In this document: positions 16,606-22,679 of the stretch, piece after piece
Numbering within the stretch: the first letter of the stretch is position 1
Layout of the letters: each line of letters begins with the position of its first letter
Source of the DNA: Trichosphaerium sp. ATCC 40318
Taxonomy: Eukaryota > Protista > Tubulinea
Length of the DNA stretch: 64,000 bases
Assembly: GCA_038496445.1 (NCBI GenBank)
Contig: JALMLS010000228.1
Location: 310,001 to 374,000 of the forward strand
Reading direction: 5' to 3'
Made by a program: the position numbers and the translations under genes
Notes under the pieces: generated by a model
What the model saw: only the letters and a program-made list of their open reading frames with translations
The model's database searches: none
What the model was told of the DNA's origin: nothing

Positions 16606-17497
16606 ATCACAACATCTCTGAAACAATTCTTGCTGTTATAACTACACTGTGGTGCTGTGCGGAGTGTTTGAGGTTAGCACGAACTCCGACTTGTTTGTTT
16701 TTTTAATTCTAGCGGGACAAAGTATCACGTGGGTTAAACAAACAGAAGGCTTCCAATCAATTATCATTTTTTCCACATGTGTTTACCGTTTTAAGGTTTT
16801 AGAGGTATTTCGCACCAACATCATAGTATGTCATAAGAAACGCAAAACTGGCCGCCGCTTTTTGCGTGTGAAGTATTTCTTTTTTGATACAAAACAAAAA
16901 AGTGACTTTTTCATTCTCGTGGTATTCATAGTCTTTTGTTTGCGTATGCTGTTCCGCATGTCATAAAGCGAATGTTCGCATATGTGTACAGTAAGTGAGT
17001 CATTCTTAAAGCAGCTGTATTGTGCCTTGTCAACATGCAATCAACTGAACATATGAGAGAATGGTAGCGGTGATATGAAAAGATTTATGGTTCAGGACAT
17101 TACCACACCGTTGTTGGTGCCACTTAAGCAAAGTACAACCAGACACATAAAGGAAAACGACTTGCGGGTTTTCTAGCGCTATTTATTGGTTTTGTGTCAC
17201 TGTGTCAACAACAGGGTTTCAAACACTGATACACCCAAAACTACTTGTTAGCATTTTCTAGCGCTACTGAACACTTTTGCTAGCGAACCAAAGAAGTACA
17301 CAGTTCGCTAGCTCTCTTCCTTTTTAAAGGAATTTATTTTCATTCAACACAAAAAGCATTCGCAGCAGCTCTTCACTTGCAAATCTTTTAAGTACGTCAA
17401 TTGAAACTATATCAAAGCTTATTTTTGGATGTTTTTACCATCTTGTGTTTCTGATCACGTGATACTAAAAACGTCACTAAATTGTTTCTTTTTTAGA

Positions 17498-20400
17498 ATG
17501 CGCGCTTGTTTACTACTTTGCGCGCTCTTGGTTATGGTAGCCATGGTAAACGGTGCCTCAAGGCCTACTGAGTCCGTACCTAACTGTGATGCTGCTTCTC
17601 CTGACTGGGGATGTCCTCCTGGTGATTACAGAGTATTCGGAAACGGTAGAGTCGACAGACTCACTTGTAGAAAGCAACCAGAGCCTCGTATGTCTTGGGC
17701 CACAAAAGTAGTTCGCAGCAATGCCTACAGCACTTGGGCTGGTAACGAAGACGATAAAAAGCGCGAATACGTTCCTGACATGGTCATGGACATAAGTATT
17801 CGTGTCAACAACTACGCTTTCAAATACCGCGGTATTCTCATCTATGCTCAAGATGCGGGTGGTAACAGAGTTGGTGAATGGCTTCTACCAGATGAAACGA
17901 ATCGTAAGCGTACCAGAAAAAGTTCTTTTCATTTTCTGAAAACTAATGTGATTCATGACCTTTTTGGCTTTTTTTGTTGTGGTTTATTTTCTGACTCTTT
18001 TGTAGCATTCTTTCAATTGCCTTGGCCTAATACACACGTGTGTCGCCAAAGTATTACACACAACAGCGCTGAAATCAAGCCTCTTAAGTCAACATGGAAG
18101 TGGAAGGCTCCGGCAAGAGGAACAGGAGCAGTAACTTTTCACTGTTTGATTAAGCAAGGTGATGCCAATACTGGCGCCTTTTATTGGCCAAACAACGGTG
18201 GCGCTGGTCCACTCAAACTCACAGAATCAAGAAGCGGTAAACCACGTCAAACATGGTTTCAATCCAACGTAAGCGTTTTTCTTTTTACTTTTTCTTTTTT
18301 AAATGTTGTTCCCTCACTAATGTTTCTTCTTAGAGAGGTCAATCTTGTACTGATAGATGTGCTGAAGAGAATCTCCAATGTGATGTCGTCCATATGGAGC
18401 GTGTTAACAGCCCAACGAGAATCGAACAGCTCATTATTCCACAAAGTTTCCCTTGCAAACTTCCATATGTCAGCGGATGTAGCAACAAAGGAGCTACAAT
18501 GGGCACTGATGGCCTTTGCTATTTTGACGATACAAGATGTGCATCACAAGGACGTAATACAGGAAGAGTTACCTGTGACTCCAGAAGCGGTGATACAAGA
18601 ATCGGGTATGCTACACTCAAAGTCAAACCGTTTTGCTTTTTTTAAATTCGGGTTTCTTTGAACTTACCTTCTTTGTTAGACTTCGTATGTGCAAATGTCT
18701 TGCAAATACTCTTCCACCTGCCAACCCAGGCAATACTGTTATTGCCGCAAGAGGTGCAACCTCACCTGCAACAAAATCGACAACATCATTCTTGTTCATG
18801 GCTCTCTCTGTCCTCGGTTTGACAATGCGTTCTTCTGGAAAAATGACAACTTCAGTTGTCTTGGCTCTCTTCCTCATTGCTTTGGTTTCCTTCCCTACCA
18901 CTCAAGCTCACAACTGGCAATTTGGAATTGGTAGAAGCGCAGATATTGCTAGTACCCAAACACCATGTCCATCCAGAAGCCAAGCTTCTCCTCACGTTCA
19001 AGTCGGTCCAGGACAACGTTTTGAAATTGAGTGGGCTGTTGGTCATACACACCCTTCATACTACGTTATCGTCAAAGCAGAAGATGAACCAAGACTCAGA
19101 GAAGTTACTTTTGACTCCATGGAGACGTACCTCAATGAAGCATCAAATGGAGACTGCCAAAACTTGCCTGTATACCACAGACAATTCAGAGCTCGTGATG
19201 CTGGTTTTAATGCTTTCTTACAATACTACAGCGGAGCGATCCCTAAAACCTCTCCAAATTTCATCCCCAGACCAGAAGCCTTCGGTGTTTGGGCAGATGA
19301 TGCTACATTGTTCGGATACAAGGACAACCTAGAAGTAAGAAACTACTGCGAATACAGAAATAGCAAGATGCCTTTCGTTAGAGGTATATTCAAGTTTGAA
19401 CATTTTGCACACAGAGCTCAAGACGCCGACATGGTCAGACTTCGAGTTCCTGCCGGATCTGAGTTTGGTGCTTATGTTGTACAATGGCTATGGAGAGGAT
19501 ACAGAGATTGTATTGACCTTGACTACGTCAACAGACAAGTTAAAGATATCTATGGTCTACCAAACCCTGATGGTGGTTTCACGTACGTTCACTTTTCTTG
19601 TTTTTTCTCTTCACATGTGTTTTCTCACGTGCCAATTCTTTTTTTTAATACTAATTTATCACATTAATTAACTTGATTTTTAGTCGTATTGATCACTGTT
19701 ATTTCCCTGATCTCCGTGAAGTTTTTGGTAAGTTGTTTTTACTTAATAACTGCGTTGCATGTACTTCTTACTAACATGCTCATGTAGATTGTCACAGAAT
19801 TTACAACGATGCTAGTGTTTGCGCTAGACAATGTGAACAGAGACAAGGTGGATGTGAAGGATATATTGTCATGCCTCGATTCCCTGAAGCAAACCAATAC
19901 AACGGGCAAGCTAATCTCCTTCCTCAGCTTTGCAAAGATGTTGTAGTCAACATCGGCGCTGACTGGCAAACATCTGACGTTTGCTTTACTGTCCGTGCTC
20001 GTTTGGCTTCCGAAACCTTCGGTCTAACAGAAATCGTACATGCCGGAGATCCAGCCTACCACTCGACATGTTATTTGAAGGGATCAGGACGTCTATTTAC
20101 CGACTTTGAAATCCCACCTCTACATCAAGATATCCCATGGAGACACGGAGATGAGTGCATTTCTTGTGATGCTGCGAACCTTAACAAAAACATCACACGT
20201 ATTCCTAAATGGCCTATGACAAACGACTGTAGAAACTGCGACTTGGAACCAAAGACTGATACACCTCCATTCAATCCACCTCAACTCATCCTCAAACAAG
20301 CCGGCATGTTCTGTGACGGTTTCTACGGATTCTGGTTCAACCTTGGAGGTGGCGTAAGACACCACACATGCAACAACGGTGCTGAAGGTACATGCCATAA

Positions 20401-20662
20401 AGAAGTACTCATTAGAGGACGTATTGCCAACTGGAATCAATGGCATTTCCCTGGAGAATGTGCAGCTGCCGCTTCACTAGATCCAGAGTGTTCTGATGAT
20501 ATCTACACTCTAGACTTGACATTTCTCACATACAGAGACCAAATGGCAGTTAGATGTTGGTGTATTCGAAAACAAAGCTGTTGTAATGGGTGCAGACCAA
20601 CAGATCCTGGAACTGACTCTCACATGTGGAATATATGGACACTTGATCGTGGTACATCATAA
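17498..20662 (+). CDS. Secreted multidomain protein: signal peptide - reeler domain - Cys-rich module - hydrophobic anchor - internal signal peptide - LPMO-like His-brace domain - Cys-rich C-terminus
   Basis: SP MRACLLLCALLVMVAMVNG; reeler motifs EYVPD..ISIRV..FKYRGILIYAQD..RVGEW, SITHNSAEIK..WKWKAP..GTGAVTFH; GQSCTDRC..C..RMCKC module; MTTSVVLALFLIALVSFPTTQA|HNW...EIEWAVGHTH...YVVQWLWRGYRDCID; five GT-AG introns, upstream three checked for frame. Confidence 0.8.
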
Positions 20663-20839
20663 ATAACAAATAGTCAAGCATACTTTTTTTTAAATACAAT
20701 AATAAATAAAATAATCTAATATCTCATCCCTCAAAACGTCTCAGTTATCACACATTAAGTTTTTGAAATAAAAAAATTGTTTGTAATATAGCGAGTTATT
20801 AAGTTAAGACAGTCACGTGTGTTGGTTGACAATCAAGTT

Positions 20840-22679
20840 TTATTGTTGAGCGGTTTGTGATTTTTTTTTGGATTCTTCCCATTTACTTATAATATCTCTA
20901 TTTGAATAGTACCTAGAAGCAAATCTCCATACAACACCCCAAGCACCTAAGAATATAATACTTCTACTAGCATCTAAAAACTGGTCAGAAAATACTCAAA
21001 AAAGAAAATTTATTACGTGAAACAAAACAACCTATACTTACGGTATGATGCTTTACGAATTCTGGGTACAAGCCATTTCGCTACTGTTTCTGCTTCTTCT
21101 GATAAACAGTTAAGTATCTTTCTCTTCATAGGTGTTAGATCTGTGGCGCCTAATAATAGATCTGTAGCAACCATGCCAGGCTGACATATATGTAATTTTA
21201 TTTTGCTGTATTTATCTATTTATTGCAAAAATAGAGTCAGTACATGTTTTGCTGTACGAAGAAACATTCATGAAAGATGCGTACCTCCAGCTTTCTTTAG
21301 CTCTTTGTTTAACGTCTTAATCATTTGTCCATAGGGAGCTATAGAGAATGAGAAATTAAGAAAAATTAATAAATAAATAAATAAAATTAGGGTATCCATT
21401 ACCTTTTGAAGCTCCGTATGATGCGAAAGAAGGTGTGCTCATGTCTAATACAACTCATTAGATAAAATCGTGTTATAATATCAAAGGGTAATCAAGTTAC
21501 TTACATTTAGATGTAGGACCACCAGCGCCATCCATAAGAAAGATATTTCCGCCATTTGGTTGCTTAGCCATTAAATTAATAGCAACTTGAGTACCATAAA
21601 TAGCACCTAAAATACCACATTAAGATGCTTACACTCTCTTACCACTCAATGTGCTACCCAAAAGTTGCAGTTAACCCCAACAGCAAACTTAATCGGGTAG
21701 TTTGGAGTTGAGATGTTTGAAAAAAAAGTAAATCCATAAAAATATTTTTAACTTCAATGTTACAGTGTTCTCTTTAAAATGTTGTGTTACATACCAAGTA
21801 AATTTGTTTCAATAACCGAACGTATATCGTTGCTATCAGAAACTTCCCAAATTGGTTTCCTTGTTGATTGAGTCTTACCTGCATTATTAATCCAAATATC
21901 TATCGAACCTAGAAAAAAAAGAGAAAAGTAAGTTAAAAAAAACCCAACTAAATCTTTGCGAGAAATACACGTAAATCACCAACTACGCGTGGACATTGAG
22001 TCCGCGCGTAGCTATCAATTAGAGGCAGTTTTTCCAAAAAAAAAAGTACAAGAATAAAACATCAACCGCTGGCACGTGCTGACTATAATAGTAAAACTGA
22101 GTCTTTTTTTTTTACCTAGTTCTTGTTGTGCCCATTCACCAAAGTTTTTGAGTTCTTCAGCGTTCGTAACGTCACATGCTCTTCCAATAATGTTTACATT
22201 TTCAAAATCTTTGTTTAGTGTACTAACAGCGTTATCAACCTTTTGCTGAGATCTAGACATTATAACGACGTTATCACCCAAGTTTGCAAACTCGTGAGCC
22301 AGCGCATAGCCCAAACCTAAAAGGTTTGTTAACGGACAATCAATTTTGCGAACAAGAATCTAGTATATGAACAGTTGGGGCAGTGAAAGCGCGTAATAGC
22401 GTATTAAAGCGGAGAATAAATAAGAGGAAAGGATAATTATTTTATAGCGTTTGATAGACGCTGTAGAATGTATTTTAGTTCAGTTTAGCGAATGCAGGAA
22501 CGTTTAAAGCAAGTTTAGACAGAGAAAGCGTTAGTACCAGCAGAACTTCCCGTTATTACTACGTTGCGGTTATTTCTCGTGTAGTCTACGCTACTACAGA
22601 ATAAAAACCTGTAACCCAAATAAACAGCAGCAGCTGAAACACCGGCGATCAAAGCTGTGGAAAGGTTGTCTTTGTTCAT
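20840..22679 (-). CDS. Short-chain dehydrogenase/reductase, chlorophyll(ide) b reductase NOL/NYC1-like, N-terminal membrane anchor
   Basis: NVVITGSSAG|LGYALAHEF..GDNVVIMSRS, IDIWINNAG, GNIFLMDGAG, TPSFASYGASK, QPGMVATDLLL, LSEEAETVAKWLVPRIR. Confidence 0.85.

Follow-up and report, generated by a model that had tools for sequence, protein, structure and literature searches.

Copper proteins of the LPMO type (CAZy AA9, AA10, AA11, AA13, AA15 and AA16) and the X325/Bim1 proteins share a beta-sandwich and a second invariant His, and the first His of the mature chain is bared by signal-peptide removal. A free amino terminus on this residue, His1, is needed for copper binding and is unmasked when the signal peptide is cut off (PMC10952591). 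N-terminal signal peptides are found in all known LPMOs and other histidine-brace classes, according to a 2023 review (PMC10952591). Processing at internal signal peptides has been described for viral envelope polyproteins. In the bunyavirus glycoprotein precursors, an N-terminal signal peptide precedes a stop-transfer segment; after a short loop in the cytosol comes an internal signal peptide with its -3/-1 site, and the retained hairpin anchors the upstream product (PMC7926653). Host signal peptidase processes the flavivirus prM-E-NS1 junctions in this way too. A third group, the Reeler proteins (PF02014), comprises insect and mollusc defence proteins, F-spondin, and ferric-chelate reductase 1, which combines Reeler with DOMON and cytochrome b561.

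We analysed a gene of Trichosphaerium sp. ATCC 40318 that brings elements of these three systems together in one chain. What appears to be new is the internal position of a His-brace-type domain behind an internal signal peptide, as inferred from sequence alone; LPMOs and signal-peptidase polyproteins are themselves already known. This layout was not found in the literature searched (LPMO with internal signal peptide; histidine brace in a polyprotein; LPMO in a haptophyte), which also held no paper pairing reeler with lytic polysaccharide monooxygenase. The gene lies in a stretch of 64,000 nucleotides, the whole of which is called the window here, and it is built as follows.

17498..20662, + strand: whole gene; hand-built model with six exons and five introns, all GT..AG
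17498..17903, + strand: exon 1 of the gene model; signal peptide and first half of the Reeler module
18006..18268, + strand: exon 2; second half of the Reeler module
18334..18605, + strand: exon 3; Cys-rich part of the N module
18680..19582, + strand: exon 4; closes the N module (RMCKC) and contains the linker, the hairpin and the entire His-start domain
19684..19727, + strand: exon 5; 44-nt mini-exon that opens the C module, its residues aligning to those of homologues
19788..20662, + strand: exon 6; Cys-rich C-terminal module and TAA stop, without a hydrophobic tail

The introns measure 102, 65, 74, 101 and 60 nt, and the joined frame of the six exons is open over 920 codons, giving a single frame of 920 aa. 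Exon 4 had at first been placed at 18680-19583, which held in part: the exon ends at 19582, and the donor GT begins at 19583. Introns 1-3 are confirmed by RNA contigs about 92% identical to the window, which derive from a relative and not from the window's own genome. The 17903|18006 joint is present in contigs of runs X1 and X2, and the 18605|18680 joint occurs in spliced contigs of the same two runs (depth 152 in X1). One contig of 696 nt (depth 152) spans 18065-18268|18334-18605|18681-18895, leading from exon 2 by splicing into exon 4, across the hydrophobic hairpin and beyond an ATG at 18843; the next contig downstream has a nearly equal depth of 158.5. An RNA joint 19582>19787 with intervening letters is consistent with the mini-exon. 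All listed differences between window and RNA contigs are synonymous (six in exon 3; 14 listed from 18417 to 18788). The open frame and the splice joints are established. A tblastn search with the gene model found no paralogue elsewhere in the 64-kb window.

The initial annotation had proposed one open reading frame on one mRNA, and this is supported by the relative's spliced RNA contig, by transcriptome ORFs and by an intronless homologue, although contigs are not proof of a single full-length molecule. It had also named splicing that removes the hairpin as an outcome that would refute it, and the contig of the relative retains the hairpin. A misassembly or a wrong splice model that merges two neighbouring genes is all but excluded. 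In favour of such an artefact, the model was built by hand, and if intron 3 is left unspliced the upstream frame meets a stop at 18661. Against it stand the 18605|18680 joint in the spliced contigs of both runs and the identical domain order in many independent assemblies and transcriptomes.

The encoded chain begins with a signal peptide and a Reeler and Cys-rich module, and continues with a 14-aa hydrophobic segment, the loop RSSGK, a second hydrophobic segment that ends in PTTQA, and the residues His391-Asn-Trp.

17498..17554, + strand: N-terminal signal peptide MRACLLLCALLVMVAMVNG (aa 1-19), read from the sequence
18786..18827, + strand: H1, first hydrophobic segment SFLFMALSVLGLTM (aa 350-363); proposed stop-transfer segment
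18828..18842, + strand: loop RSSGK (aa 364-368, net charge +2); proposed to be cytosolic
18843..18908, + strand: H2 with c-region MTTSVVLALFLIALVSFPTTQA (aa 369-390), ending Pro-Thr-Thr-Gln-Ala; proposed internal signal peptide
18909..18911, + strand: His391 (CAC; His1 of the domain); proposed N-terminal residue of the second product
18909..19580, + strand: LPMO-like 'HNW' domain (224 aa)
19044..19046, + strand: His436 (H46 of the domain), invariant in 69 sequences; candidate second copper ligand

The residues quoted in the initial annotation, its ATG at 18843 (Met369, 18843-18845, the exact start of H2) and its CAC at 18909-18911 are all in the sequence, and the upstream part does have its own N-terminal signal peptide; a similar hydrophobic N-terminus occurs at the matching alignment position in homologues. 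For the description of H1 as GPI-signal-like, the evidence is mixed. The segment follows a Ser/Thr/Ala/Gly-rich linker, as in GPI signals, but it is short and does not lie at the C-terminus of the encoded chain, where the basic loop and the second hydrophobic segment come after it, and GPI anchoring is not shown.

We propose that the gene encodes a secretory-pathway polyprotein, with one mRNA giving one 920-aa precursor. Led by the N-terminal signal peptide, the Reeler and Cys-rich module (roughly aa 20-320) would enter the ER lumen; H1 would halt translocation, and the basic loop would remain cytosolic. The second hydrophobic segment (aa 369-385) would then re-insert in the manner of a signal peptide and offer its c-region to ER signal peptidase, which would cut at Ala390|His391. 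The predicted upstream product is a Reeler protein that the hairpin would retain in the membrane; the downstream product would be a soluble protein of 530 aa that starts with His391, may form an LPMO-type copper histidine brace with His436, and ends in a Cys-rich tail of possibly PAN-like binding function. We consider these two products of a signal-peptidase cut the likely outcome. How the chain crosses the membrane, whether it is cut, whether the product binds copper or acts as an oxidising enzyme, and what becomes of the hairpin are all matters of inference, in the case of the cut from conservation alone.

The N module is tied to Reeler through its homologues, as the initial annotation had supposed. 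Pfam Reeler matches P0003, P0004 and P0006 with 30-36 bits against a cut-off of 21, and P0023 has a precomputed match above the cut-off. Such homologues match the N-part of the window protein with E of about 1e-34 to 1e-40 (6.5e-40 for P0004 over aa 28-322; 9.4e-34 for P0006), and this part is homologous over ~300 aa to the N-parts of most fused relatives, with E down to 3e-67. Reeler clusters are also the language-model neighbours of the module. Pfam searches with the separate exon translations of the window gave no Reeler match, because intron 1 splits the domain. While the homologues' N module passes the Reeler cut-off, it departs from known Reeler proteins in two ways: a family-specific Cys-rich region ending in R-x-C-x-C follows the Reeler domain, and Reeler shares one chain with a His-brace domain.

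A full HMMER scan returned 364 relatives of the His domain. The initial annotation had suggested searching protist proteomes for a reeler-TM-SP-His layout, and this layout was found: the domain is internal in 82 of the 150 best relatives, and a two-segment hydrophobic hairpin precedes it in 71 of these 82. The source organisms are named for few hits only, and most hits are metagenomic. Fused ORFs are present in Trinity transcripts of Flabellula baltica (two), Rhizamoeba saxonica and Cavostelium apophysatum, so that three amoebozoan genera have them in de novo transcriptomes; further ones occur among MMETSP transcripts, and one homologue is a single intronless ORF of 4 kb on a genome contig. 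In the 71 homologues with a hairpin, the median lengths are 15 aa for the first hydrophobic segment and 5 aa for the loop, whose charge is mostly positive (median +1).

The putative cleavage site is conserved throughout the 82 fused clusters, which are <=50% identical to one another yet related and hence not independent trials. Position -1 is Ala in 70, Gly in eight and Ser in four; position -3 is A, V, S, T, C or G in all 82, with A or V in the family profile, and Pro is the commonest residue at -5/-4. Such a -3/-1 pair falls on 10.5% of random positions in the same proteins, and the pattern at the internal sites exceeds chance, with the reservation that the clusters are related. Positions +1 to +3 read H in 80, N in 81 and W in 81 clusters, with D at +1 in the other two, and the H1-N2-W3 start of the domain is invariant in alignment A1. 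Lack of His at +1 in homologues, which the initial annotation would have taken as refutation, is confined to these two of the 82 clusters. The second signal-peptidase site of that annotation, with small residues at -3 and -1, held as a sequence motif, the cleavage itself remaining an inference. A crude matrix derived from 25 N-terminal signal peptides of the family placed the true internal site among the top four in only 47 of the 82 proteins; neighbouring positions of the same hydrophobic stretch compete with it, and the matrix is too weak to pinpoint the site.

Unfused relatives carry the same His directly behind an ordinary N-terminal signal peptide, and the -3/-1 pattern at the internal sites matches the one before their N-terminal His. 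Fused and unfused forms are interleaved on the domain tree, and the internal segment and the N-terminal signal peptide therefore seem interchangeable, although 5' truncation of the gene model may explain why some of the relatives count as unfused. We regard conservation as shown both for the architecture and for the motif at the cleavage site.

Two rival readings bear on these data. First, the chain may not be cut at all: it would be a two-pass membrane protein with an uncut helical hairpin, its Reeler and HNW parts both exoplasmic and His391 an ordinary internal residue. Two hydrophobic segments with a short basic loop would make a stable hairpin, cleavage has not been observed, and uncut helices may also end in small residues. 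However, this reading gives no reason for the -3/-1 rule in 82 of 82 clusters, for the Pro at -5/-4 or for the invariant His at +1; it is at odds with the position of that His in the unfused relatives and with the interleaved tree; and a His blocked by an amide cannot form a histidine brace (PMC10952591). We regard it as unlikely.

Second, the downstream protein could have a transcript to itself or be started at Met369, with H2 an ordinary signal peptide and the fused frame incidental. Supporting this, a Met stands exactly at the start of H2 in the window gene, unfused family members exist, and the contigs do not prove full-length molecules. Yet only 13 of the 71 fused homologues with a hairpin place a Met in the loop or where H2 begins, and internal initiation is therefore not conserved. 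Moreover, the RNA contig links exons 2, 3 and 4 past 18843, with similar depth on both sides, and the junction is open and in frame in all 82 clusters and in transcriptome ORFs of several genera. We judge two messages or two start sites very improbable.

Searches of word-indexed protein collections gave 6 matches for P0001, 5 for P0002:1-350 and none for exon 4 at E<=1e-10; neither a close relative of the protein encoded in the window nor a clear stand-alone N module that stops at H1 came out of them. Conceivably, the hairpin goes back to a GPI-anchored Reeler gene that became fused to the gene of a secreted protein downstream, an idea for which we have no supporting data.

Returning to the cleaved polyprotein, the HNW domain is likely to have an LPMO-like fold, judged from structural matches and without a sequence link to any LPMO family. 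Its model has a pLDDT of 92. LPMO and X325 chains form the majority of the 50 best VIA-align matches, and in all of these chains residue 1 of the model falls at or near the mature N-terminus; the best of them, AA15 5msz and LaX325 6ibh, align from residue 1. Foldseek searches of PDB, AFDB clusters and Swiss-Prot returned mixed Ig-like folds with low TM scores, LPMOs included, and were not decisive. VIA-align was the more informative of the two methods for this domain. Within a 69-sequence alignment, His1 and H46 are invariant and H29 is conserved in >90%. These features support the initial annotation's proposal of an internal LPMO-like His-brace domain, with copper binding and activity inferred; the closeness of H46 to His1 was not measured in the model, and its role as second ligand is that of a candidate only. 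The window domain has no Pfam match (LPMO_10, AA9, BIM1-like or other LPMO models), the 69 family members gave one AA9 match at E 0.0057 and none at any cut-off, and neither phmmer nor the 69-sequence profile found a PDB chain.

The domain resembles LPMOs and X325/Bim1 in its likely beta-sandwich, its second invariant His and, if the inferred cut takes place, a first His bared by signal-peptide removal. Unlike them it has no sequence-level membership, and it is mostly internal, whereas every known LPMO and every other His-brace class has its signal peptide at the N-terminus, according to the 2023 review (PMC10952591). An H-N-W start and an early second His, at position 46, also differ from the characterised LPMO families. 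It remains possible that the precursor is cleaved as proposed and that the HNW domain is no polysaccharide-cleaving enzyme: it could bind or handle copper like the fungal X325/Bim1 proteins, or work alongside the Reeler module as its partner in redox reactions or in binding. The role in attack on prey or cyst walls put forward in the initial annotation is not shown, nor is a 1:1 product ratio as a selected trait.

The C-terminal module travels with the HNW domain, both in fused and in unfused relatives. Ten of its 14 invariant columns are Cys. It has no Pfam match, and its model reaches a pLDDT of only 69. In the Atlas its neighbours, at 0.86-0.88, are PAN clusters that share few features with it, and the best Foldseek matches of this model are HAI-1 and its MANEC domain (E 0.66 and 3.1). 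A PAN/MANEC-like fold is possible on these weak signals.

The whole pattern of signal peptide, stop-transfer segment, loop, internal signal peptide and small residues at -3/-1 is present in the window and, element by element, in 71-82 of the 82 fused homologues. It parallels the bunyavirus-type precursors, including the proposed anchoring of the upstream product by a retained hairpin (PMC7926653). In contrast to viral polyproteins, this is a spliced cellular gene family of protists, and the cut seems to serve the creation of a catalytic or metal-binding N-terminal residue, beyond the separation of glycoproteins. On balance we lean towards a bolder reading: that these genes form a widespread cellular polyprotein family in protists (Amoebozoa and many unnamed environmental lineages) with ER signal peptidase as the maturation protease. 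Removal of the internal signal peptide would create the metal-binding N-terminal His of a new LPMO-like family, and the same cut would place the Reeler partner in the same membrane at equal dose.

If this reading is true, cells would have their own counterpart to the processing of viral glycoprotein precursors, and the family would be an exception to the rule of the 2023 review that His-brace proteins come directly after an N-terminal signal peptide (PMC10952591). Confirmation would mean that the chemistry of a free N-terminal His can be obtained from an internal signal peptide within a larger precursor, and would end the working rule that a non-N-terminal LPMO domain is an annotation error. 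It would also add a large family from protists that escapes the present LPMO models of Pfam and provide a cellular, non-viral model of polyprotein processing by signal peptidase. The obligatory pairing with a membrane-held Reeler module would offer a lead to the partner of the His-brace protein, be it in substrate capture, electron relay or copper delivery.

Read from 17300-20900, the six exons join into a 2763-nt frame of 920 codons closed by a TAA stop, and five of the five introns are GT..AG, with sizes of 60-102 nt. The gene and its translated product are laid out as follows.

Exons of the joined frame (window coordinates) and segments of the translated sequence
17498-17903, + strand, exon 1
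18006-18268, + strand, exon 2
18334-18605, + strand, exon 3
18680-19582, + strand, exon 4
19684-19727, + strand, exon 5, a 44-nt mini-exon
19788-20662, + strand, exon 6
aa 1-19, + strand, N-terminal signal peptide
~300 aa, + strand, N module with the C-terminal end R-M-C-K-C
between N module and H1, + strand, linker rich in Ser/Thr/Ala/Gly
aa 350-363, + strand, hydrophobic segment H1, SFLFMALSVLGLTM
between H1 and H2, + strand, loop RSSGK
aa 369-390, + strand, hydrophobic segment H2 and c-region, MTTSVVLALFLIALVSFPTTQA
from His391-Asn-Trp, + strand, 224-aa His domain
last 306 aa, + strand, Cys-rich tail without a hydrophobic end

The internal ATG (18843) and the His codon CAC (18909-18911) are seen in the sequence where the initial annotation had placed them; its only coordinate needing correction was the end of exon 4, which lies at 19582. 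Homologue alignments begin at the chosen start, 17498, and RNA depth is low 5' of it. An alternative in-frame ATG lies at 17429, 23 codons upstream, and ATG 17498 is immediately preceded by a stretch of pyrimidines with a terminal AG (tttcttttttag), a possible 5'UTR intron acceptor. No second copy of the gene was found in the 64-kb window by tblastn.

Related sequence is present in two RNA runs, compared here over 17400-20800. Their contigs are only ~85-99% alike to the window and thus derive from a close relative or related copies, not from this exact genome. Splice joints 17903|18006, 18268|18334 and 18605|18680 are present in these contigs, and a joint 19582>19787 with letters between fits the 44-nt mini-exon. 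One 696-nt contig (depth 152) spans 18065-18268, 18334-18605 and 18681-18895: exon 4 is spliced on, H1 and the loop are crossed, and the contig ends 52 nt past ATG 18843. The next contig 3' has a nearly equal depth of 158.5. Among the 40 best-supported differences between window and contigs, 26 affect the third base of a codon; 26, among them 14 of 14 between 18417 and 18788, are synonymous, a pattern that indicates purifying selection on the joined frame across the exon 3/4 joint into the linker. A single mRNA for the whole precursor is thus strongly supported, though not demonstrated in this genome, with the proviso that the RNA is a relative's and that contigs cannot prove a full-length molecule. 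In run X1, 32 contigs match at 85-99% identity over 17400-20800, with as many as four different contigs at one place (e.g., 20175); the organism of that run therefore seems to express several related copies, in line with a gene family.

An exhaustive HMMER scan with the His domain (window:18909-19580) against 1.84 billion representatives returned 364 proteins with E<=1e-3, of which 166 also pass E<=1e-10, the closest only 38% identical. When query residue 1 was mapped onto the best 150 of the 364, the domain proved internal in 82 (His at residue 154-921, mostly 340-400) and lay behind an ordinary N-terminal signal peptide in 28 (residue 15-45). Position -1 of the 82 internal sites is Ala (70), Gly (8) or Ser (4), and position -3 is Ala (37), Val (21), Ser (9), Thr (7), Cys (5) or Gly (3); Pro is most frequent at -5 and -4, -2 is polar, and Asn and Trp each occupy +2 and +3 in 81. 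Randomly chosen positions in these proteins show this -1/-3 combination in 10.5% of cases. The 82 fused clusters (mutual identity <=50%) are related, and hence are not 82 independent trials. The internal signal-peptidase site that had been proposed at A|H in the window is thereby upheld as a motif, the -1/-3 pattern holding at 82/82 internal sites, with cleavage itself being inferred; loss of His at +1 in homologues, which would have counted against it, is confined to two sites with Asp, the other 80 keeping His. Three relatives (P0044, P0097 and P0108) read DNW with a signal-peptidase-like site still upstream, and may possibly be copper-free derivatives.

In 71/82, the last 70 residues before the His contain a pair of hydrophobic segments, 15 and 16 aa long at the median, and between them a loop with a median length of 5 aa and a median charge of +1. 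Only 13 of these 71 have a Met in that loop or where H2 begins, so the conserved feature is not translation re-initiation. A separate transcript, or initiation at Met369, is very unlikely given the RNA contig running past 18843, the near-equal depths and a Met that is not conserved; the relative's RNA argues against the dominant transcript starting just before 18843 that would have refuted the initial annotation.

A histidine brace requires the free NH2 of His1, unmasked by signal-peptide removal, and N-terminal signal peptides are reported for all known LPMOs and other His-brace classes (PMC10952591). Internal signal peptides of viral glycoprotein precursors are also cut by signal peptidase (PMC7926653). 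In the model we favor as likely, with topology and cleavage inferred from sequence, the N-terminal signal peptide would deliver the Reeler module to the ER lumen, H1 would halt transfer, the basic loop would stay in the cytosol, H2 would restart translocation, and signal peptidase would cut at Ala390|His391. One product would be the hairpin-held Reeler module, which may later undergo trimming by signal peptide peptidase or exchange for a GPI anchor; the other would be soluble His391-Ser920, with the His brace and Cys-rich tail. The alternative, an uncut two-pass membrane protein, is unlikely, as it accounts neither for the conservation of the c-region nor for an invariant His at +1.

Over ~300 residues, most fused relatives have an N-part that matches that of the window's protein (aa 1-345; E 3e-67 to ~1e-30). 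Pfam Reeler scores above the gathering cut-off in four homologues (P0003, P0004, P0006 and P0023), and the Atlas neighbours of P0002:18-325, from another relative, are Reeler clusters (top score 0.91, 229 shared features).

The His domain has no meaningful Pfam match in the window or in any of 69 relatives, and neither phmmer nor a profile search found a relative among PDB sequences. In the domain alignment A1, where H1 denotes His391, residues H1, N2, W3, R9, H46, Y74 and G216 are invariant, and H29, D144, Y149, D174, Y189, W195 and Y198 are >90% conserved. The AlphaFold2 model built with A1 (pLDDT 92, pTM 0.89) is a beta-sandwich with two helices, and Atlas feature and shape searches lead to clusters rich in haptophytes, with LPMO_10 present in 13-23% of their members. 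The domain resembles LPMO and X325-type His-brace proteins in its inferred working, yet it falls outside every curated LPMO family and is probably best named a new LPMO-like family, copper binding and activity being inferred. We lean slightly toward a redox enzyme over an X325/Bim1-like copper-handling protein, because most structural neighbours are catalytic LPMOs; this activity, too, is inferred.

The C module (19684-20659), partner of the His domain in fused and unfused relatives alike, has 14 invariant columns, ten of them Cys; its model is moderate (pLDDT 69) and PAN/MANEC-like signals are weak. Substrate binding by the second product may fall to this module. Seven longer relatives (P0010, P0015, P0023, P0078, P0079, P0092 and P0106) have an extra hydrophobic segment ~50-200 residues before the C-terminus, absent from the window's protein, and in those lineages the second product could be membrane-anchored.

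The same architecture, which the initial annotation had suggested seeking in protists, was found, including in transcripts of three amoebozoan genera: complete fused ORFs occur in Trinity transcripts (EukProt) of Flabellula baltica (two paralogues), Rhizamoeba saxonica and Cavostelium apophysatum. Others come from MMETSP transcriptomes, and most remaining matches from metagenomes or metatranscriptomes; one unfused member is from the acantharian Phyllostaurus. The homologue P0023 is encoded on a genome contig by one ORF of 4023 nt without introns (L001:103-4125, NCBI assembly GCA_977009655.1), and the five introns of the window's gene versus none there make gene structure strongly lineage-dependent. 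An opposite-strand gene lies 170 nt downstream of that ORF. That the fused gene is an artefact is all but excluded by the spliced RNA joints and the many independent assemblies.

Fused forms are interleaved with unfused ones in a quick maximum-likelihood tree built from 69 domains, with at least seven changes forced by well-supported branches and two fully supported fused/unfused sister pairs (P0078 with P0079; P0054 with P0039). In these pairs the Reeler module may have been lost or gained recently; the alternative is truncated gene models, which may account for part of the unfused rows. The tree is compatible with an upstream module that was lost or gained repeatedly, the internal segment perhaps being able to act as an N-terminal signal peptide.

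The prey-wall or cyst-wall attack role proposed initially, and the value of a 1:1 product ratio, remain speculation. The full-text literature searched holds no described precedent for the Reeler/internal-signal-peptide/His-brace architecture and only viral cases of internal signal peptides in polyproteins; most subscription journals lay outside its coverage, and absence is not proof. The gene thus likely represents an apparently undescribed architecture that combines two known kinds, His-brace proteins on the one hand and polyproteins processed by signal peptidase on the other.
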